From the NCBI GenBank assembly GCA_002104905.1, contig MCFE01000004.1, positions 1-64,000 on the forward strand: a DNA stretch of 64,000 nucleotides, read 5' to 3'. The DNA comes from Basidiobolus meristosporus CBS 931.73 (taxonomy: Eukaryota; Fungi; Basidiobolomycota). The position numbers and the translations under genes were made by a program. This document shows positions 8,801-52,541 of the stretch, piece by piece; position 1 is the first letter of the stretch; every line of letters begins with the position of its first letter. The notes beneath the pieces were generated by a model. The model was given only the letters and a program-made list of their open reading frames with translations, was not told where the DNA came from and searched no databases.

Positions 8801-11800
8801 ATTGCGGTACCTACAGTTACTATTGATAAGACTATCATCGATTCCTATGTTACAGATGAGAAGACTATCACTGTACCTACTGTTACTGGGGATAAGACTG
8901 TCACTGTTGATAAGACCATCACCGACTCCAATGTTGCAGATGAGAAGACTGTTACTGAGGATAAGACTGTCGCTGTGCCTACTGCTACTGTTGATAAGAC
9001 TATTACTGACTTTAGTGCCACTGATAAGAAGACTATCACCATACCTACTGTTGCTGTACCTACCGTCACTGTTGATAAGACAATCACCGACCTCAGTAAT
9101 GAGAAGACAGTAACCTTACATTCTGTTACGGATGACAAGACTGTCACTGTACCTACTGTTACTGAAGATAAGACTATCACCGTACCTTCTGTTACCAAGG
9201 ACAAGACTGTCGCTGTTCCTACTATTACTGTTGACAAGACTGTCACTGACTCAAGCATTGTAAATGAGAAGACTGTTACTGAGGATAAGACTGCTACTGT
9301 GTCTACCATTACTGCTGATAAGACTGTCACCAACTCTAATGTTGCAGATGAGAAGACGACCACTGTACTAACTGCTAGCGAGGATAAGACTACTACTGTG
9401 CCTACCGTCACTGTTGATAAGACTATCACTGACTCTAATGGTGTTGATGAAAAGACTGTCGCTGTAACAACGGTTACCGAGGACAAGACTGCCACTGTGC
9501 CTACCGTTACTGTAGATAAGACTATCACCGACTTCGAAGGCTCGGATGACAAGACTGTCACTGTACCAACTGTTACCGAGGACAAGACCGCCAATGTGCC
9601 TACTGTTACTGTTGATAAGACTATCACCGACTCTGATGGTGCTGACAAGAAGACTGTCACTGTACAAGCTGTTACCAAGGACAAGACTGCCACTGTGCCT
9701 ACCGTTACTGTTGATAAGACTATCACCGACTCTGATGGTGCTGACAAGACTGTCACTGTACAAACTGTTACCGAGGACAAGACTGCCACTGTGCCTACCG
9801 TTACTGTTGATAAGACTATCACCGACTCTGATGGTGCTGACAAGAAGACTGTCACTGTACAAACTGTTACCGAGGACAAGATTGCCACTGTGCCTACCGT
9901 TACTGTTGATAAGACTATCACCGACTCCGATGGTGCTGACAAGACTGTCACTGTACAAACTGTTACCGAGGACAAGACTGCCACTGTGCCTACCGTTACT
10001 GTTGATAAGACTATCACCGACTCCGATGGTGCTGACAAGAAGACTGTCACTGTACAAGCTGTTACCAAGGACAAGACTGCCACTGTGCCTACTGTTACTG
10101 TAGATAAGACTATCACCGACTCCGATGGTGCTGACAAGACTGTCACTGTACAAACTGTTACCGAGGACAAGACTGCCACTGTGCCTACCGTTACTGTAGA
10201 TAAGACTATCACCGACTCTGATGGTGCTGACAAGAAGACTGTCACTGTACAAGCTGTTACCAAGGACAAGACTGCCACTGTGCCTACTGTTACTGTAGAT
10301 AAGACTATCACCGACTCCGATGGTGCTGACAAGACTGTCACTGTACAAACTGTTACCGAGGACAAGACTGCCACTGTGCCTACCGTTACTGTTGATAAGA
10401 CTATCACCGACTCTGATGGTGCTGACAAGAAGACTGTCACTGTACAAGCTGTTACCAAGGACAAGACTGCCACTGTGCCTACCGTTACTGTGGATAAGAC
10501 TATCACCGACTCCGATGGTGCTGACAAGACTGTCACTGTACAAACTGTTACTGAGGACAAGACTGCCACTGTGCCTACTGTTACTGTTGATAAGACTATC
10601 ACCGACTCTGATGGTGCTGACAAGAAGACTGTCACTGTACAAACTGTTACCGAGGACAAGATTGCCACTGTGCCTACCGTTACTGTTGATAAGACTATCA
10701 CCGACTCCGATGGTGCTGGTAAGAAGACCGTCACTGTACCAACTGTTACCGAGGACAGGACTGCCACTGTGCCTACTGTTACTGTTGATAAGACTATCAC
10801 TGACTTCGAAGGCTCTGATGACAAGACTGTCACTGTTGATAAGACTATCACTAGCTTCGAAGGCTCTGATGACAAGACTGTCACTGTAACAACGGTTACC
10901 GAGGACAAGACTGCCACTGTGCCTACCGTTACTGTTGATAAGACAATCACCGACTCCGATGGTGCCGGTAAGAAGACCGTCACTGTACCAACTGCTACCG
11001 AGGACAAGACTGCTACTGTACCTACCGTCACTGTTGCTAAGACTATCATTGGCTTCGAAGGCTCTGATGACAAGACTGTCACTGTAACAACGGTTACCGA
11101 GGACAAGACTGCCACTGTGTCTACTGATACTGTTGATAATACAATCACCGACTCCGATGGTGCTGGTAAGAAGACTGTCACTGTACCAACTGTTACCGAG
11201 GACAAGACTGCTACTCTGCCTATCGTCACTGTTGATAAGACTATCACTGACTTCGAAGGCTCTGATGACAAGACTGCCACTGTGCCTACCGTTACTGTTG
11301 ATAAGACAATCACCGACTCCGATGGTGCTGGTAAGAAGACTGTCACTGTACCAACTGTTACCGAGGACAAGACTGCCACTGTGCCTACTGTTACTGTTGA
11401 TAAGACAATCACCGACTCCGATGGTGTTGGTAAGAAGACTGTCACTGTACCAACTGTTACCGAGGACAAGACCGCCACTGTGCCTATCGTTACCGTTGAT
11501 AAAACTGTCACTGACATCGATGGTGTTGGTAAGAAGACTGTCACTGTGCCAACTGTTACTGTTGATGAGACAATCACCGACTCCGATGGTGTTGGTAAGA
11601 AGACTGTCATTGTACCAACTGTTACTGAGGACAAGACTGCTACTCTGCCTATCGTCACTGTTGATAAGACTATCACTGGCTTCGAAGGCTCTGATGACAA
11701 GACTGTCACTGTAACAACGGTTACCGAGGACAAGACCGCCACTGTGCCTACTGTTACTGTTGATAAGACTATCACCGGCTCTGATGGTGTTGGTAAGAAG

Positions 11801-13333
11801 ACTGTCACTGTACCAACTGTTACCGAGGACAAGACCGCCACTGTGCCTATCGTTACCGTTGATAAAACTGTCACTGACATCGATGGTGTTGGTAAGAAGA
11901 CTGTCACTGTACCAACTGTTACCGAGGACAAGACCGCCACTGTGCCTATCGTTACCGTTGATAAAACTGTCACCGACGTCGATGGCTCTGACAAGACTGT
12001 CACTGTGCCTACTGTTACTGTTGATAAGACAATCACCGACTCCGATGGTGTTGGTAAGAAGACTGTCATTGTACCAACTGTTACTGAGGACAAGACTGCT
12101 ACTGTACCTACCGTCACTGTTGATAAGACTATCACTGGCTTCGAAGGCTCTGATGACAAGACTGTCACTGTAACAACGGTTACCGAGGACAAGACCGCCA
12201 CTGTGCCTACTGTTACTGTTGATAAGACTATCACCGACTCTGATGGTGTTGGTAAGAAGACTGTCACTGTACCAACTGTTACCGAGGACAAGACCGCCAC
12301 TGTGCCTATCGTTACCGTTGATAAAACTGTCACTGACGTCGATGGCTCTGACAAGACTGTCACTGTACCAACTGCTACTGAGGACAAGACCGCCACTATG
12401 CCTATGGTTACCGTTGATAAAACTGTCACCGACGTCGATGGCTCTGACAAGACTGTCACTGTACCAACTGCTACTGAGGACAAGACCGCCACTATGCCTA
12501 CGGTTACCGTTGATAAAACTGTCACCGACGTCGATGGCTCTGACAAGACTGTCACTGTACCTACTGTTACTATTGATAAGACAATCACCGACTCTGATGG
12601 TGCTGACAAGACTGTCACTGTACCAACTGCTACTGAGGACAAGACTACCACTGTGCCTACTGTTACTGTTGATAAGACTATCACCGACTCTGATGGTGCT
12701 GACAAGAAGACTGTCACTGTACAAGCTGTTACCGCGGATAAGACTGTCACCGTATCTACCGTCACTGTTGATGAGATTACCACGGACTCTAATGCTACAG
12801 ATGAAACGACTGTCACAGCTGAAATGACCGTCACTGTGCCTACTGTTACCAAGGATAAGACTATCATTGATGGAATGACCACAACTGAGAAGAAGACTGT
12901 CGTCACAGTAACTGCTATTGAGAATAAGGATATCGCAGCTCCAACGATTGTCTCCACGATAGCTGAAGTATCTATTGCTACGCCTACGGGTGCAACCAAG
13001 AGCAGTACAGAGACCGATTCTGTCGTTGCTACCATAGCTCAACGTACTGAAATTGCCAGGGAACATACCGCTGTGTCTCACTCTACCCTGCGTTCTGCAT
13101 CGCAACAATGTGATCCTCAAACTATCACCGTTACCATCACAAAAACCGTTGATACAACCATCTCCACTGAACCTACAGTTGGCATTGAATGCGTTGATGG
13201 GCAGTACAAATGTATAGATCCAGGCTATTCACCAAGATTTACCATCTGTAGCAATGGTAAACTATACGAAAACCAGTGTTCTTCCGGCACCGTATGTAAA
13301 CCACTGGAAGGATCAATCATTTGCGATTGGTAA
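5849..13333 (+). CDS. Giant secreted Thr/Val-rich repeat protein (mucin/adhesin-like) with C-terminal CBM19-like chitin-binding module
   Basis: Single 2494-aa ORF with an N-terminal signal-peptide-like segment (MRFTYGLSAAIAFANALSA) and >1900 aa of T/V/K/D repeats. The Cys-rich tail CVDGQYKC...FTICSNG...CSSGTVC...IICDW has the fungal CBM19 pattern. Confidence 0.88.
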   Translation: MRFTYGLSAAIAFANALSALQQSGPVLDDGILPLSKKADHQSAQSKSTVPAPTHSSLTTVATEASLRSSSVNRPLSSQEHDLKPKNSELPDVKAMVSDRRVEDDHRIVSEHVASGGKKATSTGSSLLPKSTISMSVISKKQKEHSAAAVDTLPDTVSVYSTFLEYQTYTEPPTVIFETTNQLLTTDVGSGSVKVTHVETIHATVTSKESVTHVDTVKETITIAAKPETERHTLTEHHTLTKKEFETPTEVVRTALDTKHEVHTVTKKKTLKPVTVTPTVLVTKKPANKDSATESIPDTATVYSTYIEYQTYTEPPSIIVETTNQLLTTDVGSGSAKETYVETIHATVTRKESVTHVDTVQETTTIAEKPETERHTVIKHRTLTKKESESPTVVVRTALDTKHKVHTVIKKKTLQPVTVTPTITESIIIEKETFQHTVTAPTVTVSETDQHTVTAQETNQHTVTDKETVQHTISASTVTDRETDQHTLTAPTVTDKETVQHTETDENTIQHTVTERETSQHTITAPVVTDKKTVQHTVTAPTVTDKETVHNTVTAPTVTSKETVQHTVAAPTVTDRETDQHTITDKETVHVTPTASTVTDKETFQHTVSGPTITDRETDQHTIIDKETVHVTPAASTVTAKETVQHTVSAPTVTERETDQHTITDKETVHVTPAASTVTEKETVQHTIATPSIERVTNQHTVTDRETMQHTITAPTVTEVHTYNQTLPGITVTDEKTRSLEATIIRDKTVTAPTVTVDRTITGANVTNEETVTAPTVTEEKTITAPTVTEEKTVTAPTVTEDKTVVAPTVTVDKTITDSDNTKDNSVSTVTVDKTIIMPTVTGDKTITIDKTITDSNVAAERTVIVPTVTKDKTVTEPTITEDKTVTEPTITEDKTVAAATVTVDKTITDSNVAGEKTVTVPTGTEDKTVIVDKTIINSGTADEKTVTIHSVTDDKTVTIPTVTVDKTITGSNVVDQKTVTEDKTIAVPTVTIDKTIIDSYVTDEKTITVPTVTGDKTVTVDKTITDSNVADEKTVTEDKTVAVPTATVDKTITDFSATDKKTITIPTVAVPTVTVDKTITDLSNEKTVTLHSVTDDKTVTVPTVTEDKTITVPSVTKDKTVAVPTITVDKTVTDSSIVNEKTVTEDKTATVSTITADKTVTNSNVADEKTTTVLTASEDKTTTVPTVTVDKTITDSNGVDEKTVAVTTVTEDKTATVPTVTVDKTITDFEGSDDKTVTVPTVTEDKTANVPTVTVDKTITDSDGADKKTVTVQAVTKDKTATVPTVTVDKTITDSDGADKTVTVQTVTEDKTATVPTVTVDKTITDSDGADKKTVTVQTVTEDKIATVPTVTVDKTITDSDGADKTVTVQTVTEDKTATVPTVTVDKTITDSDGADKKTVTVQAVTKDKTATVPTVTVDKTITDSDGADKTVTVQTVTEDKTATVPTVTVDKTITDSDGADKKTVTVQAVTKDKTATVPTVTVDKTITDSDGADKTVTVQTVTEDKTATVPTVTVDKTITDSDGADKKTVTVQAVTKDKTATVPTVTVDKTITDSDGADKTVTVQTVTEDKTATVPTVTVDKTITDSDGADKKTVTVQTVTEDKIATVPTVTVDKTITDSDGAGKKTVTVPTVTEDRTATVPTVTVDKTITDFEGSDDKTVTVDKTITSFEGSDDKTVTVTTVTEDKTATVPTVTVDKTITDSDGAGKKTVTVPTATEDKTATVPTVTVAKTIIGFEGSDDKTVTVTTVTEDKTATVSTDTVDNTITDSDGAGKKTVTVPTVTEDKTATLPIVTVDKTITDFEGSDDKTATVPTVTVDKTITDSDGAGKKTVTVPTVTEDKTATVPTVTVDKTITDSDGVGKKTVTVPTVTEDKTATVPIVTVDKTVTDIDGVGKKTVTVPTVTVDETITDSDGVGKKTVIVPTVTEDKTATLPIVTVDKTITGFEGSDDKTVTVTTVTEDKTATVPTVTVDKTITGSDGVGKKTVTVPTVTEDKTATVPIVTVDKTVTDIDGVGKKTVTVPTVTEDKTATVPIVTVDKTVTDVDGSDKTVTVPTVTVDKTITDSDGVGKKTVIVPTVTEDKTATVPTVTVDKTITGFEGSDDKTVTVTTVTEDKTATVPTVTVDKTITDSDGVGKKTVTVPTVTEDKTATVPIVTVDKTVTDVDGSDKTVTVPTATEDKTATMPMVTVDKTVTDVDGSDKTVTVPTATEDKTATMPTVTVDKTVTDVDGSDKTVTVPTVTIDKTITDSDGADKTVTVPTATEDKTTTVPTVTVDKTITDSDGADKKTVTVQAVTADKTVTVSTVTVDEITTDSNATDETTVTAEMTVTVPTVTKDKTIIDGMTTTEKKTVVTVTAIENKDIAAPTIVSTIAEVSIATPTGATKSSTETDSVVATIAQRTEIAREHTAVSHSTLRSASQQCDPQTITVTITKTVDTTISTEPTVGIECVDGQYKCIDPGYSPRFTICSNGKLYENQCSSGTVCKPLEGSIICDW
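6307..7110 (+). repeat. Two-copy intragenic duplication, period about 429 bp (143 aa)
   Basis: DTVSVYSTFLEYQTYTEPP...KKTLKPVTVTPT is repeated as DTATVYSTYIEYQTYTEPP...KKTLQPVTVTPT. Confidence 0.9.
7150..8010 (+). repeat. His-containing 15-aa repeats (HTVTAPTVTDKETVQ) with an embedded 3 x 120-bp repeat
   Basis: Visible in the translation. GACTG(A/AT)CAGCATAC...AAAGAAACAGTCCATGT recurs at about 7576, 7696 and 7816. Confidence 0.85.
8090..12870 (+). repeat. Coding minisatellite of TVT(V/E)DKT units; 96/99-bp units forming a 195-bp higher-order repeat at about 9590-10700
   Basis: 33-aa (…SDGADKKTVTVQAVTKDKTAT) and 32-aa (…SDGADKTVTVQTVTEDKTAT) units alternate. GCTGACAAGAAGACT recurs at about 9641, 9836, 10031, 10226 and 10421. 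Confidence 0.92.
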
Positions 13334-16917: not shown

Positions 16918-17802
16918 GCTCAGTTCTCGTGGGCTCAGAAGCAGTAGGACTAGGCGTGAACCTAGCTCAACAAACTTAGATATTAGAGGAAATGCCCAGT
17001 AATGAATTTTGAAGAATAGCAACATGTTTCCAATGTAGTCAAAGAAATAATCATGAACGACGTCAAGTCGGATATACTATAAACGCCCCAAGCCTCCTAT
17101 TCAGCTCCCTCCATTTGAATCGGATAAGGAGACCTTCATTTGTGTATATCCTGAACGCAGGAAGCATATATCCACCTTCTGACAAAGCACCCTTCTCCGC
17201 AGACTGACGTCAAATTGTATGGGAATGAGCATAGCCCATGGGCCAATCCAACGTCCAGCGGGGCCATAGACAAAACCTAATCTAATGGATGTCTGAGGTG
17301 GATTTCAGCGAGTCTCCAGCAACCTGGCTTCAATGCTTTGATCAGGTACTTGTTTTCACACAGGACTCTTCGCAACAAAAGTTCCCCAATCAGAGTGGCG
17401 CAAGCCGACTTTAGGTTTGAGACAGATATGATTGATAAGCATGCAGCATCTAACACTTAATAAGTAGATCGTGCTCGTGACGGCCACCAAAGTTAATAAT
17501 ATTGGATCTAGTGATGGATATTAAATGTTCATGAGAAACAGCAGTCACGTCTTATCCACAGAAAAACCTATCATTTCAGCCACGTTCCTAACACTGTATA
17601 ATCTGCATGCCTGCTTCTTAAAGATCGGCGAGCTCCTGATGCTAGATTTGTATTTTGCTTGTTTGCTGAGTATCTTCCTTTCTTTTCAACCCCATTACTC
17701 TCTAGAGTATTCAGCCGCCATTCACAACTAGACCTATAGAGCATACACACATAATTACTGAAGTTACTTCCCAAAGATACATCTTCAACCGGCGCCTATT
17801 CC

Positions 17803-20800
17803 ATGTCTACGCTTGCTCCAGCCGTGCACAACAATGCTGCGAAGGCTGTAGATTACAAAGAGAAAGGCCCCAACTCCCTCACTCCTGCGCAACTCTTAAC
17901 CCTGTTGCAACAGTCGGAGCATGTGGACGAGGTGTTCGAGAAAGTAAACCTGGGTAATGAATCCGAGGTGTGTAAGGGTTTCGATCTGATGACTAACACT
18001 ACGCCAGATGAGGCATCCTCCAATATTTTGCAGACTCCACCTTTGGTAACATCAAATTTAGACGATACGAGACTAAAGCCTCATGAGATCACTCAACTTA
18101 CGAGGGCTGGGACACTTAAACTACTGGGAGATTACTTTAATGTTAATCCCAACACGCTGCCGCCAACCCCAGTTGATAATGAGCACATAAGCTTTGATTC
18201 TGAAGGGAACTACGACGATGTATTGGTTAAACTCTTAGTTAAGGTAATTTTGATTCATCGTTGTATGGAGCCGATACTTTGCATTCAGTGATACTTTTAC
18301 TCTACTACGGCTTGTTATTCCTTGGATGCCAGTGTTGGGTGACAACTCTCTTACTAGTTTTCTTGTGTAGACTGCCGCTATAGCGGAAGCAAACCGGGAT
18401 TCAGTCGGCCAAGTTGACCATCGAAAAAGCTCTGGTCAAGACCGTCCTTCTTGTGAGTATTGGTGTCATAATGTACTTTACTGCACTCTATGTTAACAAC
18501 AATGGAAAGTATCCAAGACAGAGCAACTTTATATCGAGGAAAACACTCCTCTGTATGCATTCATCCAAAATTTAGAATCGCTACCTTCCACCAAGGACAA
18601 TCCTAACACAACAACCAGGCCTATTCGCCAGAGGGTTCGAAGTAGTACTGAGACTTCTGACACTAACAGCCAATCTGCTCTGTCGGGAAGATCGAAAAAT
18701 GTATCTTTCAAGAGTAAAACCAGCGTTTTTCGAGCTTCAACCCTCCAGACTCAGACCAGCGACATGGGAAGACTATCCGCTGATACGAGCGGAACCTTAG
18801 CTGAGCCTTTGATTGCTGAAGAACTTTCAACGGAGCCAGGGATTATCCTAGAAGAGGAAGAGGACGATTACGGAAAGCCTATGACCGCAAAGTCGGCCCT
18901 TTTGTGGTCGTTGATTTTCCAGGAATTGCTAGATACTGAGCGGCAGTATGTCCAAGTCTTGCGCAGTGTTCTCCACGTAGGCCTCCTTTCCATACTATAG
19001 AAATTATCGGAAAGAATATTTACACCTTGTTTGAAGTTTTTTATTTCTCGTATGGAGAAGTTGGATTGGGTATCCTACGATCAGAAAAGTGAGATCTCTA
19101 GGAATATCTATGAACTGGTCGAGTTCCAGGATCAGTTCTTGCAATCCCTCGAATCATCATACCAGGCGCACCAGCTGAACGATTGGAACGCATCTGGCAC
19201 TAGCCCAGCACAATGCTTCTTGAAGTTAAGCCGGCAATTCAGGGTCTATATTCCTTACTGTTCAGAGCACGACAGCGCGCAAAAAGCTTTGATCGAGCTG
19301 GAAAAGAGAGCAGAATGGGTGTCTTTCACCGAGGTGCGTACATGCATGTAATTTAATATCGGATTCCCACAACCACTAATAGAATGTGATTGTCAACAGG
19401 AGTGTGCTGCAGATATTCAACGAGAATCCAAAACCACTAGACTGCCTATCCAGAGCTATCTAATGGAGGTGATGTATCCTCCATGCGTATGAGAACTGCA
19501 CCATCTCCTGACATGTTATTCATAGCCAATCCAACGCATTTGTCGATACCCGTTACTCCTAGAGGTATGTGCTTCATGATGTCAGAATTCTGTCGGACAT
19601 GCAATAACGGATTTTCCCAGAAACTGATGGAGTCCACTCAGAAAGATACCCTAGCTTTCAGAGAGGTGCTTTCAGCCAGGAATCTTATCAGACGAATCGC
19701 CCGTGAAATCAATGAAAAGAAAAGGCAGAAGGAGGGGCGAGAGAAGGCCAAGATCTTGAGGAATCGACTGGAGTGTGTGCCGGTAGGTTTCAGTTATGCT
19801 TATCATAGGAAGGGTTTCGGTTGGTTCTAAGCATAGAGTCAAATCCAGGGACTGAGCCTAGAGTTCGTCCACAGCTTGGGTAGTATCGTCATCGCCGGTG
19901 CACTGCTGGTGGCGAATTGCCAAATGCAGCCCCCTAAAGTCAAGTATTATGGGTGTGTGCTATTTGAAAGCTACCTTTTGGTGATCAAGGCAAAGAAAGC
20001 GACTGCCTATGAACCAAAACATTGGCTTCCTCTGTACAAGATAGATATTCATGATTTCAATGATGGTAGGTGCATATTTGTTAGTAAGAGGTGGATCGCT
20101 TCTCTGACCCCTGGCTATGCTTAGATGGAAATGCTTGGAGCATATCTTATCTTTCGAAACCGGTCTTGGAATTTCAGGCAACGTGCGAAAGGGAGAAGCA
20201 GCTTTGGTTTCAGACTCTGTCCAAACTAATCTCAAAGAGCAAACGTGCCAGACATCAAGCGAATCATCCGCCAGCCCTTGAGCAGTCGCCATCCTCACTG
20301 TCTCTCTGCGTGCGAACAGAGCAGAGAGAACTCTTAAACCAATCAAAGCTTAATCCTCAACTTGAGTCTACCCTCATGAGAGAGCCGTCAAGTAGCTTAA
20401 ATAGTGGTGGCAAGATCCAGTCACTTCGCACTTCGGTCGACATCAAGCTCGGTGATCTGTTTACTCAGGAGTGTGTGGCATCCAGAAATCTTGAAAACGC
20501 AGCCATGCTCAAGTCAGACAGCGGACAAACCAAGCGCTCAGTCAGTGCCGGGGCAATCATTAAACCTCGGAACAAATCAAACCGCAGAAAGACCTGGGGA
20601 CACTCCCTAGTCCACACCAATTCTGTTTCGAACTCTGCAGCAGGTGAATCTAACAATCCCAAATCAAGTAACTCTTTTTCAATCATGAAAGCGGAGGAAA
20701 GCAAGCCCACGATGATCAAAGCTAGTCCCGAGAAGGTACGCAATATTATTTTCAGGTATCGTGATCCTGAAGTATTCATAACCGGTATTTTAAGGGACCG

Positions 20801-21283
20801 CTTGACCGGAAGGGAGGAGTGCTCTCACCAGATGCCCCCTATTTAAAAAAAGCCACTGAAGTGACAGCCATGGAGGATTCAGAACAATTCATTGTAGAAC
20901 ACGAATTCTCTCTCTCACGCATCACTGCTGCTCGGTCACTTAAGTTTAGAAAAATGTTCTGGAGAGGCAAAATCAACAGCGATCCTGACCCTAAGGAAGC
21001 AGCATGGAAGGGTAACCCGCCACGCCTAGAGACAAGCTTATCTGACGACTCCCTGCATCTTTATAAAGACAGCAATGGCGGGAAAATGCGAGGGAATTTC
21101 TTTGGAAGGATGTCGGAGAAATTAAAGCCTAAGCAAAGGTCAGTGAACTCCGCGCCTGATCTGAAAAACTGTCTCGCAGCATCTTTGGAGATGTCCGACT
21201 CTCTAACCAACTCTCGACAAACCCAATGCACGAGTAATCTCAACTCTATGGATCATGGTGCCTCGAAAATTCTGGCACCTTGA
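17803..21283 (+). CDS. Rho guanine-nucleotide exchange factor (DH-PH), multi-exon
   Basis: DH motifs QELLDTERQYVQVL, IYELVEFQDQFLQSLE, FRVYIPYCSEH and (spliced) SYLMEPIQRICRYPLLLE. PH motifs YYGCVLFESYLLVIK and EFQATCEREKQLWFQTL. Confidence 0.88.
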
Positions 21284-22044: not shown

Positions 22045-23643
22045 TTACACACGAGGACCCGCAGCGATGATTTCCTCAGTGGCCTGGTCTTGATAGATCT
22101 TGAAGTTCTCCTGGAATAGTCCAGCTAGCTTGCGAAGTGTGCTCTCGAACTCCTCCTTGGGCCCTTGCCATGAGCTGACTGGGTTGAGGATGACATCGGG
22201 CACCTCGCTGCAGGTCTTGGGGATCATGAGGTTGAACACTGGGTACGCCTCGAACTCGACCTTCTCTAGCTCGCCCGAGTGGATGGCGTTGATGATGGCA
22301 CGTGAGTACTTGATGGAGATTCGCTCGCCGACTCCATAGGCACCTCCGTTCCATCCGGTGTTGATCAGCCACACGTTGGTCTTGTGCTCCTTCATCTTCT
22401 CCGCCAACATCGAGGCGTACTTCACTGGATGCCAGGCCAGGAATGGCTGGCCGAAGCAGGCCGAGAATGTCGCCTGTGGCTCGGTGACTCCCTCCTCGGT
22501 ACCGGCAATCTTGGCCGTGTATCCGGAGATGAAGTGGTACATGGCTTGCTCAGGGGTGAGTTTGGCAACTGGCGGGAGCACTCCGAACGCATCACATGTC
22601 AGCAGAAGGATGTTCTTGGGATGACCGCCAACGCAAGGAATCTTGGCGTTGGGGATGTACTCGATGGGATAGGCACACCGGGTGTTCTCTGTGATCGATG
22701 AGTTGGTGAAGTCTACCACTCTGGTTTCATCATCGAGGACAACGTTCTCGAGGACTGATCCGAACCGGATTGCCCCGAAAATCTCGGGCTCCTTTTCGGC
22801 AGAGAGGTCGATACACTTGGCGTAGCAGCCACCCTCGATGTTGAAGATGCCATCATCCGACCAGCAGTGCTCATCATCACCGATCAACGAGCGACGAGGA
22901 TCAGCCGAGAGAGTGGTCTTGCCTGTGCCGGAGAGACCGAAGAACAGGGACACATCTCCATCCGGGCCCTCGTTGGCACTCGAGTGGAGTGAGAGCACGC
23001 CAGCCTTTGGCATCAGGTAGTGCATCACCGTGAAGATGCCCTTCTTCATCTCACCGGCATACTGTGTGCCAAGGATGACGAGCTCGCGTCTCTCGAAGCT
23101 GATGGCGACACTGGTGGTGCTGGTCATTCCAGAGGTGTATCTGTTGGCGGGGAACTGGCCGGCGTTGAAGATGGTGAAGTCAGGCTCGCCAAAGTTCTCG
23201 AGCTCCTCCTCAGTGGGGCGGATGAGCATGTTTCTCATGAAAAGTGCGTGGTAGGCACGGGCGCACACAACACGGACCTTGATGCGGTACTTGGGATCCC
23301 ATCCTGCGAATCCGTCAAACACATACAGTCTCTCGCGAGTGTTCAGGTAGTCCACCGCACGCTCGTGGTTCACTCGGAACACTCGCTCCTCCAGGGGGAT
23401 GTTCACTGGGCCCCACCAGATCTCACCGTCGGTGGACTTCTCTTGGACCATGCGCTTGTCTTTGGGGCTTCTGCCGGTCTTGTGTCCTGATCTGGTGACC
23501 AAGGCACCGCTGGAGGCCATGACGGTGCCAGGCTCATAGTTGAGAGCGTGCTCGTAGAGCTGAGCAACGGAGAGGTTGCGCAGGATAGGCTTGCTGTAGT
23601 CGATACCAGCTTCAGGAGCCAAGTGGAAATCGGTATGAGTCAT
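22045..23643 (-). CDS. PCK1: Phosphoenolpyruvate carboxykinase (ATP), copy 1, intact, intronless
   Basis: 532-aa ORF with [17 protein letters not shown]-loop [27 protein letters not shown] and ENTRCAYP. Confidence 0.97.
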
Positions 23644-24762
23644 TTGGAGTTGAAAAACTGTTGAATTGCTGATTCAAGGACGCTGTTTGGATTATTTTAT
23701 AGTTGCGAGCTCAAACCGTTTGCAGTGAATCATTATCAACTTCAGTAACACAAAACAAGGTGGAATATGTGAGATTGCGTAGTTTCTCCAGCAGGCTGTT
23801 GTAGATCGCACAGCCGGCGACAATCTGGATTCAGCAGAGTGGTGGCTAACTGACTAATTAGAAGGATGGCGATTACCTCACATCAAAGGCTTAGGCTAAA
23901 TAGTAACTAGATTTAGAATGCGTCCAATGGCACAGTGTGATTCGTAATTTCGAAAATCATTTCGGCAATATTTCGTGGCTGCAAGACTGTCACCGCTCAT
24001 TCTCCGGATATGGCCAAAGCCAAGAAAGCAGTCCAATGCGACCCCTCCTTCCCGACCAACTATTCCAGTATACAATCCCGGTCCTGATTTATACAAATTA
24101 CTAAACATGTGAAAGCAGTAAGTTGCCTGGAGCACGGGTTTTATGGAGCCCGCGAATCCAGGTTAAACTTGTCAAGACAATTGGAATTCGGCTCCGTACT
24201 CGAATTTTGGAAGGAATGGTACCTGCGTAATGTCACTCGCTAACATTATCCCATAATTGTCAATGTTTTACAAAAGTACCTGGCCATAGTTACAAAAAAA
24301 AGGCTAGGTTCAATTGGAGCTGATGTAACGAAAGTTCAGAAGTTGGTCAGGTATTTATATAGAGTAATTGGATAGATATTCAGACCCGATCTGTTGATTC
24401 CAGAATGATTGAACCATCTTCCATCCAACGCCATTTTAGGCCTCTAGCCCGTGGGAAAAGTCCCATCAACATGAATGGACCAAAAGTGAAACAATTTTTG
24501 TGGGGTCATCCAGGTGTGTGGCTTGTATGGTGAGGGGCATGAAATGTATTGGAAATACTACTTTATTTGATCAGATAAAATCCCAAATGCGTATAGGCAT
24601 ATTTTCAAAAGAATAATGGCTAATTTGTTGATTTGACTATTGAACTCTAGGCAAAAAATGTTTCGGAGGGATGTGGAGAGCTGGGTGTGCCGTGCTTGAT
24701 ATTGCGTATATAAGTGATTCGGAAGAATCCCATTTCAGCAGTAAAAAACTTATCAACTCCAA

Positions 24763-26363
24763 ATGACTCATACCGATTTCCACTTGGCTCCTGAAGCTGG
24801 TATCGACTACAGCAAGCCTATCCTTGCGCAACCTCTCCGTTGCTCAGCTCTACGAGCACGCTCTCAACTATGAGCCTGGCACCGTCATGGCCTCCAGCGG
24901 TGCCTTGGTCACCAGATCAGGACACAAGACCGGCAGAAGCCCCAAAGACAAGCGCATGGTCCAAGAGAAGTCCACCGACGGTGAGATCTGGTGGGGCCCA
25001 GTGAACATCCCCATGGAGGAGCGAGTATTCCGAGTGAACCATGAGCGTGCGGTGGACTACCTGAACACTCGCGAGAGACTGTATGTGTTTGACGGATTCG
25101 CAGGATGGGATCCCAAGTACCGCATCAAGGTCCGTGTTGTGTGCGCTCGTGCCTACCACGCACTTTTCATGAGAAACATGCTCATCCGCCCCACTGAGGA
25201 GGAGCTCGAGAACTTTGGCGAGCCCGACTTCACCATCTTCAACGCCGGCCAGTTCCCCGCCAACAGATACACCTCTGGAATGACCAGCACCACCAGTGTC
25301 GCCATCAGCTTCGAGAGACGCGAGCTCGTCATCCTTGGCACACAGTATGCCGGTGAGATGAAGAAGGGCATCTTCACGGTGATGCACTACCTGATGCCAA
25401 AGGCTGGCGTGCTCTCGCTCCACTCGAGTGCCAACGAGGGCCCGGATGGGGATGTGTCCCTGTTCTTCGGTCTCTCCGGCACAGGCAAGACCACTCTCTC
25501 GGCTGATCCTCGTCGCTCGTTGATCGGTGATGATGAGCACTGCTGGTCGGATGATGGCATCTTCAACATCGAGGGTGGCTGCTACGCCAAGTGTATCGAC
25601 CTCTCTGCCGAAAAGGAGCCCGAGATTTTCGGGGCAATCCGGTTCGGATCAGTCCTCGAGAACGTTGTCCTCGATGATGAAACCAGAGTGGTAGACTTCA
25701 CCAACTCATCGATCACAGAGAACACCCGGTGTGCCTATCCCATCGAGTACATCCCCAACGCCAAGATTCCTTGCGTTGGCGGTCATCCCTAAGAACATCC
25801 TTCTGCTGACATGTGATGCGTTCGGAGTGCTCCCGCCAGTTGCCAAACTCACCCCTGAGCAAGCCATGTACCACTTCATCTCCGGATACACGGCCAAGAT
25901 TGCCGGTACCGAGGAGGGAGTCACCGAGCCACAGGCGACATTCTCGGCCTGCTTCGGCCAGCCATTCCTGGCCTGGCATCCAGTGAAGTACGCCTCGATG
26001 TTGGCGGAGAAGATGAAGGAGCACAAGACCAACGTGTGGCTGATCAACACCGGATGGAACGGAGGTGCCTATGGAGTCGGCGAGCGAATCTCCATCAAGT
26101 ACTCACGTGCCATCATCAACGCCATCCACTCGGGCGAGCTGGAGAAGGTCGAGTTCGAGGCGTACCCAGTGTTCAACCTCATGATCCCCAAGACCTGCAG
26201 CGAGGTGCCAGATGTCATCCTCAACCCAGTCAGCTCATGGCAAGGGCCCAAGGAGGAGTTCGAGAGCACGCTTCGCAAGCTAGCTGGACTATTCCAGGAG
26301 AACTTCAAGATCTATCAAGACCAGGCCACTGAGGAAATCATTGCCGCTGGTCCCAAAGTTTAA
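24763..26363 (+). CDS. PCK1: PEP carboxykinase (ATP), copy 2; two apparent +1 frameshifts (about 24823 and 25789) that are probably consensus artefacts
   Basis: Collinear with copy 1 from ATGACTCATACC (24763) to the stop at 26363. Extra bases occur at ATCCTTGCGC and CATCCCTAAG. Confidence 0.85.
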
Positions 26364-26837
26364 GCTAGTCAACCTCTAAGATCTGTAAATAATTGCATAT
26401 TTTCGCATTTTCTTTGAAGTTTGTATTCTGTGCACAATGCGAAGTATTGAATTATAAATATTTCAATAAATCACCACTTGTCTCAAACACGAACTAAATT
26501 TTGCGATGTCGAATCCCACGTGATGTTGCAACTAAGGCGTAGGTATGGGGTGCAATATATTTTTGCTTCGAATTCGTCGAGCCTCCAGTTTGCCACTTCA
26601 CATGGAAAATACCACCAACTCTTTGGTATGTGTGATAAGCGTGGCATGAGTTGATACCATGTGATAGTCGCATATCGTAACACCGCCTGCAGATCACTTT
26701 TCACAAAGGGTTAAATGATCGCTCCCTATATGCAAACTAGTCATGTTGAGCATGTACGTAGCTAGAAATATGGAGAGATGGCATGATATCATGTAGTGAC
26801 CCCGAGAATAAAACAATGCGTAGTAGGCTAGGTCAAG

Positions 26838-26845
26838 TATAAATA
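26838..26845 (+). promoter_or_regulatory. Putative TATA box of the small secreted protein gene
   Basis: TATAAATA lies about 60 nt upstream of the ATG at 26901. Confidence 0.45.
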
Positions 26846-26900
26846 GGAGAAAAATTCACCCACCAAATCAGAATCAGCCCATCTTTTCTTAATATTCGCA

Positions 26901-27104
26901 ATGCAATTCAAGATTCTTACTCTCATCTCCATGGTGCTGGCCCTTTTGTTGGTCAGAGAGGTAAAGGCCGGAGTGTTAGATGTGCTAAAAGCAGTCAATC
27001 CCAATCACGAGGCGAAACCCGCAAGTCCCTTGCCAGCTGATGGTGGGAAACCCATTCTCCCACTCAAACCAATTAAATCGCCGATCATTAAGCAAGGTCT
27101 GTGA
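26901..27104 (+). CDS. Small secreted Pro/Lys-rich peptide, unknown function
   Basis: 67-aa ATG-initiated ORF with a classic signal peptide (MQFKILTLISMVLALLLVREVKA/G), an upstream TATA box and an AT-rich 3' region containing AATAAA. Confidence 0.7.
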   Translation: MQFKILTLISMVLALLLVREVKAGVLDVLKAVNPNHEAKPASPLPADGGKPILPLKPIKSPIIKQGL

Positions 27105-27372
27105 AGCGGCGGTTAACAATGAAACTACCAAGAGTTTAGACGCCTGGTATATATGTATTTCTTATTATTAGCTAGTTCGCTGTTTTTCCATGAATAAACA
27201 ATACCCAATATTTGATATGAAAATATTTAGATTTGAATGAGTTTATAAAATATTTGATTTAGCAACTATAAACAATATGTACGGATGCGTGGGAAAAATG
27301 GGTTAAGTCCGCTAGGAGGCGACATGAATAGTGGCTTTTAGGTATTCTGTTCTTATATACACCGTAAAATGC

Positions 27373-28971
27373 TTATACTCTGGGACCAGCGGCAATGATT
27401 TCCTCAGTGGCCTGGTCTTGATAGATCTTGAAGTTCTCCTGGAATAGTCCAGCTAGCTTGCGAAGCGTGCTCTCGAACTCCTCCTTGGGCCCTTGCCATG
27501 AGCTGACTGGGTTGAGGATGACATCTGGCACCTCGCTGCAGGTCTTGGGGATCATGAGGTTGAACACTGGGTACGCCTCGAACTCGACCTTCTCCAGCTC
27601 GCCCGAGTGGATGGCGTTGATGATGGCACGTGAGTACTTGATGGAGATTCGCTCGCCGACTCCATAGGCACCTCCGTTCCATCCGGTGTTGATCAGCCAC
27701 ACGTTGGTCTTGTGCTCCTTCATCTTCTCCGCCAACATCGAGGCGTACTTCACTGGATGCCAGGCCAGGAATGGCTGGCCGAAGCAGGCCGAGAATGTCG
27801 CCTGTGGCTCGGTGACTCCCTCCTCGGTACCGGCAATCTTGGCCGTGTATCCGGAGATGAAGTGGTACATGGCTTGCTCAGGGGTGAGTTTGGCAACTGG
27901 CGGGAGCACTCCGAACGCATCACATGTCAGCAGAAGGATGTTCTTGGGATGACCGCCAACGCAAGGAATCTTGGCGTTGGGGATGTACTCGATGGGATAG
28001 GCACACCGGGTGTTCTCTGTGATCGATGAGTTGGTGAAGTCTACCACTCTGGTTTCATCATCGAGGACAACGTTCTCGAGGACTGATCCGAACCGGATTG
28101 CCCCGAAAATCTCGGGCTCCTTTTCGGCAGAGAGGTCGATACACTTGGCGTAGCAGCCACCCTCGATGTTGAAGATGCCATCATCCGACCAGCAGTGCTC
28201 ATCATCACCGATCAACGAGCGACGAGGATCAGCCGAGAGAGTGGTCTTGCCTGTGCCGGAGAGACCGAAGAACAGGGACACATCCCCATCCGGGCCCTCG
28301 TTGGCACTCGAGTGGAGCGAGAGCACGCCAGCCTTTGGCATCAGGTAGTGCATCACCGTGAAGATGCCCTTCTTCATCTCACCGGCATACTGTGTGCCAA
28401 GGATGACGAGCTCGCGTCTCTCGAAGCTGATGGCGACACTGGTGGTGCTGGTCATTCCAGAGGTGTATCTGTTGGCGGGGAACTGGCCGGCGTTGAAGAT
28501 GGTGAAGTCGGGCTCGCCAAAGTTCTCGAGCTCCTCCTCAGTGGGGCGGATGAGCATGTTTCTCATGAAAAGTGCGTGGTAGGCACGAGCGCACACAACA
28601 CGGACCTTGATGCGGTACTTGGGATCCCATCCTGCGAATCCGTCAAACACATACAGTCTCTCGCGAGTGTTCAGGTAGTCCACCGCACGCTCATGGTTCA
28701 CTCGGAATACTCGCTCCTCCAGGGGGATGTTCACTGGGCCCCACCAGATCTCACCGTCGGTGGACTTCTCTTGGACCATGCGCTTGTCCTTGGGGCTTCT
28801 GCCGGTCTTGTGTCCTGATCTGGTGACCAAGGCACCGCTGGAGGCCATGACGGTGCCAGGCTCATAGTTGAGAGCGTGCTCGTAGAGCTGAGCAACGGAG
28901 AGGTTGCGCAGGATAGGCTTGCTGTAGTCGATACCAGCTTCAGGAGCCAAGTGGAAATCGGTATGGGTCAT
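27373..28971 (-). CDS. PCK1: PEP carboxykinase (ATP), copy 3, intact
   Basis: 532-aa ORF whose translation matches copy 1. Confidence 0.97.
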
Positions 28972-29630
28972 TTGTAGTTAGGCTTGGATATGATTATGAG
29001 TACGATTGAACCACTTTTGATATCTTTTATACAGCAACCATAGGCGTTGCCACCCTCCCACCCTCCGTTCTTGCCGTATCACAATACCAACTGAACCTAT
29101 TCACCAATTGTCTGAATGGCAATACTTCTTACTATGGCAGTATTGTAATGGCTTAATATCTAGACCTCCGCCTCCAGATCCATATTTTTGCACCCGTGAT
29201 TCACAGCGGTTTCAGTTGCAGGTTATTTTATTTCCAATGCATTATATACCAGAATGTATTCCAATAAGGTAATTTTGCTCCAGTATATAGTATTCTTACC
29301 AGAGTTACTCCTAGAATGGTAATTATATCGGTGAAAATTCAATCGATTACAGAAACTTGTATACAACAGTTACCAGCGTAATTACCAAGGGCTCACACGA
29401 TCAAGGTATATGTATATGTTGTCCTCGACTAGTTTCGTTATCTTTTCACGAAATTGGAATACCCCATGATTTAATCGAGATTATGTGGATTTTGAATGAG
29501 TTTATATAATAAATGATTTAGCAACTATAAACAATATGTACGGATGCGTGGGAAAGTGAGATTGTTGAGAATGGAGGTAACTTTGATAGTAGTTTTCAAA
29601 TATGCTTGACTTATGTACACCGTAAAATGC

Positions 29631-31232
29631 TTATACTCTGGGACCAGCGGCAATGATTTCCTCAGTGGCCTGGTCTTGATAGATCTTGAAGTTCTCCTGG
29701 AATAGTCCGGCTAGCTTGCGAAGTGTGCTCTCGAACTCCTCCTTGGGCCCTTGCCATGAGCTGACTGGGTTGAGGATGACATCGGGCACCTCGCTGCAGG
29801 TCTTGGGGATCATGAGGTTGAACACTGGGTACGCCTCGAACTCGACCTTCTCCAGCTCGCCCGAGTGGATGGCGTTGATGATGGCACGTGAGTACTTGAT
29901 GGAGATTCGCTCGCCGACTCCATAGGCACCTCCGTTCCATCCGGTGTTGATCAGCCACACGTTGGTCTTGTGCTCCTTCATCTTCTCCGCCAACATCGAG
30001 GCGTACTTCACTGGATGCCAGGCCAGGAATGGCTGGCCGAAGCAGGCCGAGAATGTCGCCTGTGGCTCGGTGACTCCCTCCTCGGTACCGGCAATCTTGG
30101 CCGTGTATCCGGAGATGAAGTGGTACATGGCTTGCTCAGGGGTGAGTTTGGCAACTGGCGGGAGCACTCCGAACGCATCACATGTCAGCAGAAGGATGTT
30201 CTTAGGGATGACCGCCAACGCAAGGAATCTTGGCGTTGGGGATGTACTCGATGGGATAGGCACACCGGGTGTTCTCTGTGATCGATGAGTTGGTGAAGTC
30301 TACCACTCTGGTTTCATCATCGAGGACAACGTTCTCGAAGGACTGATCCGAACCGGATTGCCCCGAAAATCTCGGGCTCCTTTTCGGCAGAGAGGTCGAT
30401 ACACTTGGCGTAGCAGCCACCCTCGATGTTGAAGATGCCATCATCCGACCAGCAGTGCTCATCATCACCGATCAACGAGCGACGAGGATCAGCCGAGAGA
30501 GTGGTCTTGCCTGTGCCGGAGAGACCGAAGAACAGGGACACATCCCCATCCGGGCCCTCGTTGGCACTCGAGTGGAGTCGAGAGCACGCCAGCCTTTGGC
30601 ATCAGGTAGTGCATCACCGTGAAGATGCCCTTCTTCATCTCACCGGCATACTGTGTGCCAAGGATGACGAGCTCGCGTCTCTCGAAGCTGATGGCGACAC
30701 TGGTGGTGCTGGTCATTCCAGAGGTGTATCTGTTGGCGGGGAACTGGCCGGCGTTGAAGATGGTGAAGTCAGGCTCGCCAAAGTTCTCGAGCTCCTCCTC
30801 AGTGGGGCGGATGAGCATGTTTCTCATGAAAAGTGCGTGGTAGGCACGAGCGCACACAACACGGACCTTGATGCGGTACTTGGGATCCCATCCTGCGAAT
30901 CCGTCAAACACATACAGTCTCTCGCGAGTGTTCAGGTAGTCCACCGCACGCTCGTGGTTCACTCGGAACACTCGCTCCTCCAGGGGGATGTTCACTGGGC
31001 CCCACCAGATCTCACCGTCGGTGGACTTCTCTTGGACCATGCGCTTGTCCTTGGGGCTTCTGCCGGTCTTGTGTCCTGATCTGGTGACCAAGGCACCGCT
31101 GGAGGCCATGACAGTGCCAGGCTCATAGTTGAGAGCGTGCTCGTAGAGCTGAGCAACGGAGAGGTTGCGCAGGATAGGCTTGCTGTAGTCGATACCAGCT
31201 TCAGGAGCCAAGTGGAAATCGGAATGGGTCAT
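29631..31232 (-). CDS. PCK1: PEP carboxykinase (ATP), copy 4; three apparent +1 frameshifts (about 30204, 30337, 30578) that are probably consensus artefacts
   Basis: Collinear with copies 1 and 3. It is split into ORFs 30489-31232, 30317-30541/30202-30468 and 29631-30263 by single extra bases. Confidence 0.82.
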
Positions 31233-32178
31233 TTGTAGTTAGGCTTAAACGTTATTCTGAGCATTAGTGGAGTGCGCAAGTTCTATTTTATACAGTTACA
31301 GGCCTCGACATCTCGGAACCATTGGTTTATTTTATTTCACAACATAAATATAGGGTATCAGCCTGGATGGCATTGTTTTTTACTAAATCATCATAGCAAT
31401 GGCTTAATATCTAGGCCTTCGCCTCCTTAACTATATTTTTCGAACTCGTGATTCACGGAGGTTGTGGTGTAGATTACTGCCAATCAAAAAGGCATCCCAG
31501 AATATGGAGCCCTGCGGCAATTCCTGTATACTACTTCCATTCCAGAATTAACCCAGAGTTGCCATTTGCCTGACCCAGATGGGCCGAAAGAATATTAATC
31601 AGCTGAGAATATTATGAAACATAGGCTTAAAATTGTTGGCTGTAATACCGGATTACTGCGTACAAGCAATTTATGAAAGCCTCTAGCCACCAGGCAAGTT
31701 GTGTTGAAACTCATCAGCCACGCCGCGACCGAGGTCGGTAGAGTCTGGCACCTCAGTGAGCAACTAGAATGTTATCAATACCTGTCAACACATGAGTTCG
31801 AGTATGACGATGCCGGCCACTGGCTAATAACCATTCCCATACCCCACATTGTAGATTTCTCCTTTAAGCTCGGCAAGTACGGATGACTGCCGGCTCCATG
31901 TTAGCAAATAAAGTATTGCCAATTTTACAGATTGGTGACATAGAATCAAGCCTTACGACGGATGAATATATCACCGAAAAATGAAGAGTAATTTAGTTTA
32001 ATTAGTTTACAACCCGAGTAATTTATAAATATTGCAGGGTATATATGCATCATCTAATTAGATAGGTGAATAGATTAGTCTAATGGTAAACAGAGTGATG
32101 AGCAGAATTCTCAAAAATCATGTACAAAAAATGAGGATTGCGGTGGCGTTAATAAACGTCAGATTTGAAAGGCGCCAA

Positions 32179-33583
32179 CTAGAGGTCACGGACCAGACTT
32201 CTGACTGCATCGATGGTTCCAATGATACAACTGATCCAGCCGACAATCATCGTGATCGCACAAAGAACCAAATGCATCCAGCCTACATTTCTCCATCCGA
32301 AAAGCTTCAAGAAGAATGCTACTGGGAAGACAAAGATAATCTGGGTGTTCATCAGAGCACCAATCAAAGACATGAAATCACCAATGGCGGGAACGAACAT
32401 AGCAACCAGGCAGAACACCACGATTAGTGCGATTCTTAGGAGCGTGCGGAAGATAAACTCTTTAGCCTTGCCCATGTAGTTGGGATCGATCTTCAGATAA
32501 TTCTCGATATCAAGCGAGAAGTTGATCAACAGAATGGGGGCAGTGAAGAGGATATGGAGGGTAATGGCCACACGAGCAGCAATGGTAAGCCCATTCATGT
32601 AGAAATTGTTGAATACCGGCGATTGGGTGGATTGACCATAAGCCAGATAACTGAAAACACCCGCTGCCATGTACATCACCAAGGTAGTGAACATGGCTGC
32701 AGAAAGGACGGGGGTCCAAGCCTTCCGGTTGCGCATATTCAACTCTACAGAAGGAAACACCGGGCTTCCACCAAACGACAAACTAATGGATGCTAGGGTA
32801 ATGGGAAGACCCGACCCAATGATAAACTTGTGCTCGGTGTTAGCAGGACCGAGAGGTCCAGCATGATCATTACGATTCGAAATACCAACAATTGTAATGA
32901 CAATTACGGTAAACAAGGTGGTGATAACCCCAAATACACTAAAATAGGAAAGAGTTAGTTTGTTACCCGAAATACAGATTTGAAACCCATTAGACTTACG
33001 CCAACAAGTGCACCTCCTTCATATTCTTGAAGATCAAGAAGGGGACACAAACGACTGCGGCGGAGATGATGGTCCATACTTTTAGGTTGATATCAGTTCC
33101 GGCATAATCGACCAACTCTTTCAGATTCGTGGCAATCAACATGATGAAAATACAACCGACACCAAAGTAAAACCACATTACGAAGCACTGCACAACGTAA
33201 TAACCCGGTTTGCCGAAGGCTGCCTCTCCGACTGCACTATAGCCGCTTAGACGAGTTTTCTTGTCGTGGTATAGGCAGAGGATGATAAGATGTCCGGTAT
33301 AGATGCAAAGTAGACAGCAGAACACGGTGATGATGGTACCAAACCAACCACTCTGGGTGAAAGAGAAGCCCATCTGCAAGACGCCAGTTCCCGCAATAAC
33401 GCACCTATCGAAGGGAATTTGGAATCACGTAAATACGGGATGTGATGGAAAGAATCAACGCGAAATAGCTGCTTACACAATGTTGAAAAAAGCAGCGAAG
33501 TTGGAGGATTGACCCTCCTCGGTGCTGGCCACCTCCACTATTTCACTGGAGTTAGTGAACTCGTTGCTCAATTTCTTCGACAT
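32179..33583 (-). CDS. Amino-acid transporter (Aa_trans/AVT-like), 3 exons
   Basis: MSKKLSNE...AAFFNIV/CVIAGTGVLQMGFSFTQSGW, followed by many TM segments, SFGGSPVFPSVELNM, YLAYGQSTQSPV and DFMSLIGAL. Confidence 0.9.
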
Positions 33584-49832: not shown

Positions 49833-50215
49833 GATTGAATAGCACTTTGGTACAAGGAAGTGGTTGCTCTATGCCAAAGTAGCATGACGTTGGATGTATA
49901 GATAAATATTTAGCGAGATTGCACCAGCCACTAAATCCTTACGATTCTTAGTTCTCCAACATGACTAACTTTAATCAAGATATCCGAGGAAAGCGCTATG
50001 ATTAATCAACACCTGACAGATTTTGACAATCTTGGTTCGAAGGATGAAAAACGAATCCAAGCCCATGAAAATGGCGATAAAAAAATATTTTTGTTTCTTT
50101 AGTAGTCACCGAAATGGATTTTTTACACCCAATCAATTGCCCCCGAATGACTTGATGTAAATCGCTGCACTCAACCCTAGCTTGAGTCGGGGAAGTGTTC
50201 ACGTTGGAGTTCATA

Positions 50216-52160: not shown

Positions 52161-52541
52161 ATTTGAGCCATCTTTGCAGTTGTTTATACTGAGGACAATC
52201 ATCGATTAATTGTAGAAATCAAGTACATAATGTAATAATAAAGAAATACACATGATGCGTTTTCGTCTCTGGTTGAACCCTACGCTATTTTGCTTGGGTC
52301 CAATCCTCTCATAGATGAGTCTAGATAAGAAATCGGCAGCGGTCTAATCAAACTTGTAAGGCTTGTGGGTCTCAATCGGGCCTCGTCCCATTCATGAATT
52401 GTTCTAGACCGGTCGAATGGGACATCCAAACACATCAATGCATACATGCTTCTTGAAAGCGCTACTACCAACCGCGTAGGTTTTGTGGATAGCAAGAACC
52501 TTTCCTATAGTTTATTCGTGATCGTTCGAGTGCATTGAGTG

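Follow-up and report, generated by a model that had tools for sequence, protein, structure and literature searches.

The first 64,000 nucleotides (nt) of contig MCFE01000004.1 of the fungus Basidiobolus meristosporus CBS 931.73 (hereafter, the window) contain a cluster of four coding regions for phosphoenolpyruvate carboxykinase (PEPCK). Our best explanation, to which we give slightly better than even chances, is that this is an old, gene-converted cluster with two intact and two disabled copies, within a wider amplification of PEPCK genes. In more specific terms: (i) the four genes form an old cluster of type A (EC 4.1.1.49, 532 amino acids, aa), one of the two PEPCK types of B. meristosporus, here called A and B; (ii) repeated gene conversion of the coding sequences (CDS), together with strong purifying selection, keeps the four CDS 98.9-99.7% identical; (iii) +1 insertions disable copies 2 and 4 in the assembly, one of these frameshifts having probably been passed between both copies by conversion; and (iv) the cluster would be part of a genus-level amplification of PEPCK, which may raise gluconeogenic capacity on protein- or lipid-rich gut or dung substrates. 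PEPCK converts oxaloacetate and ATP into phosphoenolpyruvate, ADP and CO2, which is the committed step of gluconeogenesis.

The four PEPCK coding regions

The cluster was located by a tblastn search of the window with the first open reading frame (ORF) as query. Exactly four PEPCK coding regions were found, in the orientation - + - -, and all the pieces of these four copies match the Pfam family PEPCK_ATP (PF01293) in a profile search; both results place the copies where an earlier prediction, made from the sequence alone, had located them (Table 1). Successive copies are separated by spacers of 1119, 1009 and 659 bp, and all four of them are intronless.

Copies 1 and 3 have open frames of 532 aa whose proteins are 100% identical, and a database protein from a 280,066-bp contig (P0124) corresponds exactly to both. 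The match of copy 1 to PF01293 (E=8.9e-231) runs from position 3 to position 464 of the 465 positions of the profile, and both copies reach 766.9 bits versus a curated cut-off of 26.5. Copy 1 also has full-length matches to the solved ATP-dependent PEPCKs of Trypanosoma cruzi (1II2, E=4e-170) and Escherichia coli (1AQ2, E=8e-141). As in these enzymes and in fungal Pck1, the P-loop (GLSGTGKTT, residues 236-244) and the IGDDEH motif (residues 254-259) are conserved in copies 1 and 3, as located by alignment to 1II2. On this evidence, copies 1 and 3 are predicted to encode one and the same intact ATP-dependent PEPCK.

Copies 2 and 4, on the other hand, are frameshifted; they were searched against Pfam as separate pieces, each in its own frame, and it is only as such pieces, in different frames, that they match PF01293. 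The original prediction had described four full-length copies, a description which holds for copies 1 and 3 but not for copies 2 and 4. The three amino-acid replacements that it attributed to the latter (L84M and R531K in copy 2, T4S in copy 4) are present in the alignment.

Gene conversion between old duplicates

The four CDS are nearly identical (see above; Ks of 0.008-0.048, computed with the inserted columns removed), and the similarity between copies extends only ~13 nt upstream of the ATG and ~8 nt downstream of the stop codon. Beyond these limits, the 300-nt flanks are 41-46% identical, which is the level of random pairs taken from the window (38-46%), with the exception of copies 3 and 4, whose flanks are 64-68% identical versus 99.5% for their CDS. 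Copies 3 and 4 belong to a tandem duplication with an offset of 2257 bp (Table 1), the two units of which align by blastn with 92.5% identity over 2069 columns; of the 136 mismatches and 12 gaps in this alignment, the CDS holds only 8 and 3, respectively. Alignable flanks remain only in this pair. Since the flanks no longer align, the duplications must be old.

The variable sites within the CDS are incompatible with a single history of descent, as all three possible two-against-two partitions are present among the copies: (i) copies 1 and 2 versus 3 and 4 (sites 6 and 183); (ii) copies 1 and 4 versus 2 and 3 (sites 264, 279, 462, 1446 and 1506); and (iii) copies 2 and 4 versus 1 and 3 (the insertion after nt 1026). 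These mutually incompatible sites imply at least 3 exchange events. Furthermore, of the 18 nucleotide differences between copies 1 and 3, seven fall within the last 21 nt, all of them silent (binomial P=2e-9). The last 21 nt of copy 1 look like a segment beyond the end of a conversion tract, in which old, saturated divergence would have survived.

At the level of sequence comparison, these observations demonstrate that the near-identity of the four copies comes from gene conversion between old duplicates (concerted evolution) and not from recent duplication. In common with other cases of interlocus gene conversion, the cluster combines homogenised CDS, diverged flanks and mosaic single-nucleotide polymorphisms (SNPs).

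Very recent duplicates or retrocopies would also display a high CDS identity and, as observed here next to a neighbouring gene that does have an intron, an absence of introns. Against such an origin, which we consider extremely improbable, it must be said that: (i) flank identity falls to the random level within the short distances from the start and stop codons given above; (ii) every copy is preceded by a TATA promoter of its own, whose distance from the ATG is constant; (iii) the sites do not fit a single tree; and (iv) silent sites are saturated at the 3' end of copy 1. As for retrocopies in particular, poly(A) after the stop codons was not noted in the alignments, no dedicated poly(A) search having been made. 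A processed retrocopy was rejected, since the untranslated regions are not covered by the similarity and each copy has its own TATA box.

All 18 nucleotide differences between copies 1 and 3 leave the amino acid unchanged. Silent sites represent ~23% of all sites, so that the probability of 18 out of 18 silent differences under neutrality is ~3e-12; this result points to strong purifying selection on the PEPCK protein. The original prediction had interpreted the array as a product of strong selection for dosage or differential regulation. Selection on the protein is thus well in evidence, but the near-identity of the copies is not evidence for dosage selection, as it stems from conversion. The PEPCK CDS also stand out in base composition, with a GC content of 0.57 and of 0.73-0.74 at third codon positions (GC3), versus a GC3 of 0.39-0.61 in eight other ORFs of the window. 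This high GC3 could be due to high expression and codon bias or, alternatively, to GC-biased conversion.

Promoters and leaders

The original prediction that the upstream regions differ is borne out, inasmuch as the flanks show random-level identity and each copy possesses its own TATA box (Table 1). The leader AACTNCAA is present in all four copies. Concerning other motifs, no 8-mer is common to the four upstream regions, and two 7-mers are, versus a null mean of 0.38 and a null maximum of 3. Hence, the copies share no promoter motif beyond the TATA box. The fact that each copy has kept its TATA box and leader indicates that the duplications included the promoters, which have diverged since.

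Frameshifts in copies 2 and 4

The disabling lesions, by which pseudogenes are recognised, amount to two +1 insertions in copy 2 and three in copy 4. In copy 2, alignment and three-frame translation reveal (i) an extra T at 24824/24825, in codon 21 (CTG to CTTG); and (ii) an extra T at 25790, after codon 342, which turns CCC AAG into CCC T AAG and creates an in-frame TAA. In copy 4, the insertions are (i) an extra A at 30578, after codon 218; (ii) an extra T at 30338/30339, in codon 298 (CTC to CTTC); and (iii) an extra T at 30204, after codon 342, which is the same insertion as in copy 2. Frame 0 meets an early stop in both copies and there is no open frame; in copy 4, the P-loop and the IGDDEH motif fall inside an out-of-frame stretch. 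The GenBank models of these two copies map onto the sequence of the window and, in consequence, the frameshifts belong to the public assembly.

Several observations suggest that the frameshifts are real. The same T is inserted at the same place, after codon 342, in copies 2 and 4 and is absent from copies 1 and 3 despite their identical context. Among the four distinct insertions, two do not lengthen a homopolymer run. Moreover, insertions and deletions (indels) are absent from copies 1 and 3 (3.2 kb) and from a repetitive 7.5-kb ORF (5849-13333), so that a general error rate cannot explain five of them in 3.2 kb. We regard it as somewhat more probable than an even chance that the frameshifts are real. 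Copies 2 and 4 would then most likely be young pseudogenes, or pseudogenes repeatedly overwritten by conversion.

The transfer of pseudogene lesions by conversion is known from the gene pair CYP21A2/CYP21A1P. As in that system, a disabling lesion is common here to two copies (2 and 4) that are not closest relatives; unlike in that system, neither the direction of transfer nor the reality of the lesion is established here.

Other observations weigh against pseudogenes. The assembly of CBS 931.73, a strain isolated from gecko dung, was sequenced with PacBio (PMC7466969), and each of the five frameshifts is due to a +1 insertion. Relative to substitutions, indels are over-represented: copies 2 and 4 have four distinct indels to six private substitutions, versus a ratio of 9:128 in the flanks of copies 3 and 4 (Fisher P=0.006). 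The replacements T4S, L84M and R531K are found at positions that vary among functional PEPCKs, and both S4 and K531 occur in an intact protein (P0001) encoded on a 12.2-kb contig of the same assembly. Since all three changes are natural variants, copies 2 and 4 give no sign of relaxed constraint, that is, of amino-acid decay; their TATA boxes and leaders have been kept as well. The pattern of lesions suits PacBio consensus errors at least as well as it suits pseudogenes.

Accordingly, it could be that the five insertions are PacBio consensus errors, or a mixture of haplotypes or paralogues introduced by polishing, to which the near-identical copies on the 12.2-kb contig could have contributed. 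All four copies would then be intact and functional, and the history of gene conversion would stay unchanged. What such errors do not readily explain is the insertion common to copies 2 and 4, as well as the two insertions that are not adjacent to the same base. We see this explanation as a serious possibility, albeit one that falls short of an even chance. A metagenome scan for the region of codon 342, in its versions with and without the inserted base, gave 0 matches, and a 161-aa query (residues 200-360) used in a word search brought up no fragment of more than 88% identity from other Basidiobolus data.

It could also be thought that the +1 insertions exist in the genome and that the ribosome copes with them by programmed +1 frameshifting at CUU-N and CCC-UAA sites. 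If so, the cluster would consist of two constitutive and two translationally throttled PEPCK genes. All the lesions are indeed +1, and three of the four distinct sites resemble shift-prone contexts (CUU-G, CUU-CGA and CCC followed by the stop UAA) of the type known from the yeast Ty1, ABP140 and EST3 sites and from antizyme-type sites. Nevertheless, the fourth site, TCG-A-CTC (UCG-A), lacks a slippery codon; two or three serial shifts would leave very little product; and the intact neighbours already encode the same protein. Programmed frameshifting is, in our opinion, highly unlikely.

PEPCK amplification in the genome and probably in the genus

The cluster is not the only place in the CBS 931.73 assembly where PEPCK genes are amplified. 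A 12,205-bp contig carries at least three further type A copies (Table 1), and seven type B genes (ORX94624-28, -30 and -31) are located on one 134-kb contig. Type B proteins have 529 aa (519 and 533 in two of the models) and are 80-83% identical to the type A copies, three of them having been compared. In total, the assembly has at least 14 PEPCK loci, which belong to two old types and are distributed over at least three places, in agreement with the amplification proposed from the four copies of the window. The seven-copy type B array represents a tandem amplification of the same enzyme in the same genome; by contrast, the copies of the type A cluster are not all in the same orientation, and two of them are frameshifted.

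Repeats that are nearly identical pose difficulties for assembly, and the separate 12.2-kb contig with the same type of gene might be a haplotig; it could then be argued that the four copies of the window are a mis-assembly of one or two real genes. Nonetheless, each copy can be told apart by its unique flanks, by private SNPs and by an orientation of its own, and the copies are interior to a 280-kb scaffold, among ordinary genes. Consequently, we judge a mis-assembly of this kind to be very improbable.

A maximum-likelihood tree groups all the Basidiobolus PEPCKs into one clade within the fungi (SH-aLRT, i.e. Shimodaira-Hasegawa-like approximate likelihood ratio test, 96). This clade is composed of subclades A and B, each of which includes a sequence from Basidiobolus ranarum; types A and B thus predate the split between B. 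meristosporus and B. ranarum. An origin by horizontal gene transfer was rejected, as a single clade within the fungi indicates a native gene. Three B. ranarum PEPCKs (P0080, P0246 and P0248) are found on contigs of 1.4-1.5 kb, which is about the size of the CDS. The short length of these contigs suggests collapsed multi-copy genes with divergent flanks, and amplification and homogenisation of PEPCK could be genus-wide.

The Basidiobolus copies are 72-88% identical to the PEPCKs of other early-diverging fungi. The fungi in the match list have mostly one or two PEPCKs, compared with the four clustered copies here, out of a total of at least 14 loci. According to the original prediction, the gene is usually present as a single copy in fungi. 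This is less true of early-diverging fungi, given that some species in the list have several proteins: among the matches listed, Allomyces macrogynus is represented by three distinct proteins, and Tieghemiomyces parasiticus, Clydaea vesicula and Rhizophlyctis rosea by two each.

Two metagenome proteins from ENA (P0002, 751 aa; P0007, 648 aa) were set aside as high-scoring but unrelated bacterial-like PEPCKs. In both of them, a stretch of 100-200 residues which includes the P-loop region is repeated two to three times. These repeats may have arisen during assembly or may represent a true internal duplication.

Function and significance

A role of the amplified genes in dosage, for growth on amino acids and lipids, is plausible and fits the niche of the fungus; the gut or dung habitat put forward in the original prediction agrees with the isolation of CBS 931.73 from gecko dung. 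The cluster is a probable dosage amplification under concerted evolution; it is the outcome of a known process, ordinary in kind and not a new system.

With at least 14 loci, this is among the larger amplifications of the central gluconeogenic enzyme in the fungi listed. A retention of redundant gene copies has been suggested for Basidiobolus (Henk and Fisher, 2012; PMC3281927), and the amplification of PEPCK fits both this suggestion and the gut and dung lifestyle of the genus. In the literature library searched, no paper was found that connects Basidiobolus with PEPCK. Besides, the cluster offers a clean teaching case of concerted evolution, with what appears to be a visible conversion-tract end and with a frameshift common to non-sister copies.

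Neighbouring genes

The coordinates of the features described here are collected in Table 1. Directly upstream of copy 4 there is an amino-acid transporter gene (Aa_trans) with a canonical intron of ~61 nt (GTAAGT...CTAAC...TTTTAG). Its position beside a PEPCK gene is suggestive and no more. A RhoGEF gene lies to the left of the cluster. To the right, in a range that includes 50195-54765 (+), are genes for a Myb protein with several Myb repeats, a JmjC protein and an M1 peptidase/LTA4 hydrolase, along with a WSC-domain protein and an AAA ATPase; the surroundings are made up of ordinary chromosomal genes. No transposon ORF adjoining the cluster was seen among the surrounding genes of the window.

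Table 1. Features of the PEPCK cluster and its surroundings (window positions), and further type A copies in the CBS 931.73 assembly.
Feature	Position	Strand	Description
PEPCK copy 1	22045-23643	-	Intact 532-aa ORF, type A ATP-dependent PEPCK
PEPCK copy 2	24763-26363	+	Frameshifted in the assembly; L84M, R531K; tblastn matches in three frames
PEPCK copy 3	27373-28971	-	Intact 532-aa ORF, protein identical to copy 1
PEPCK copy 4	29631-31232	-	Frameshifted in the assembly; T4S
TATA box, copy 1	23695-23701	-	TATAAAA, -58 to -52 from the ATG
TATA box, copy 2	24707-24713	+	TATATAA, -56 to -50 from the ATG
TATA box, copy 3	29025-29031	-	TATAAAA, -60 to -54 from the ATG
TATA box, copy 4	31286-31292	-	TATAAAA, -60 to -54 from the ATG
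Tandem duplication with copies 3 and 4	27150-31463	-	Units 27150-29211 and 29407-31463
RhoGEF gene	17755-21280	+	
Amino-acid transporter gene (Aa_trans)	32182-33424	-	PF01490, E=1e-32 and 5e-22 on two exons
P0001	12,205-bp contig		Intact type A; S4 and K531
P0123	12,205-bp contig		Intact type A; P4
P0122	12,205-bp contig		Partial, 290 aa

Public gene models and names

The GenBank model of copy 2 is ORY07961.1 (P0121, 523 aa), which carries M84 and K531. In this model, an invented upstream exon (24010-24081) takes the place of the first 21 codons, and 15 conserved residues are lost to a skipped stretch. The model of copy 4, ORY07963.1 (P0006, 491 aa), carries S4 and has garbled stretches in the wrong frame. 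Both read as models forced around the frameshifts and are not reliable PEPCK sequences; hence, these two database records need correction and should not serve as such.

Finally, among the matches listed, dozens of PEPCKs from early-diverging fungi bear the name "Protein kinase C-like 1" in NCBI. In fission yeast, pck1 is a protein kinase C homologue. The name most likely reflects a wrong expansion of the gene symbol PCK1, propagated as a misannotation.

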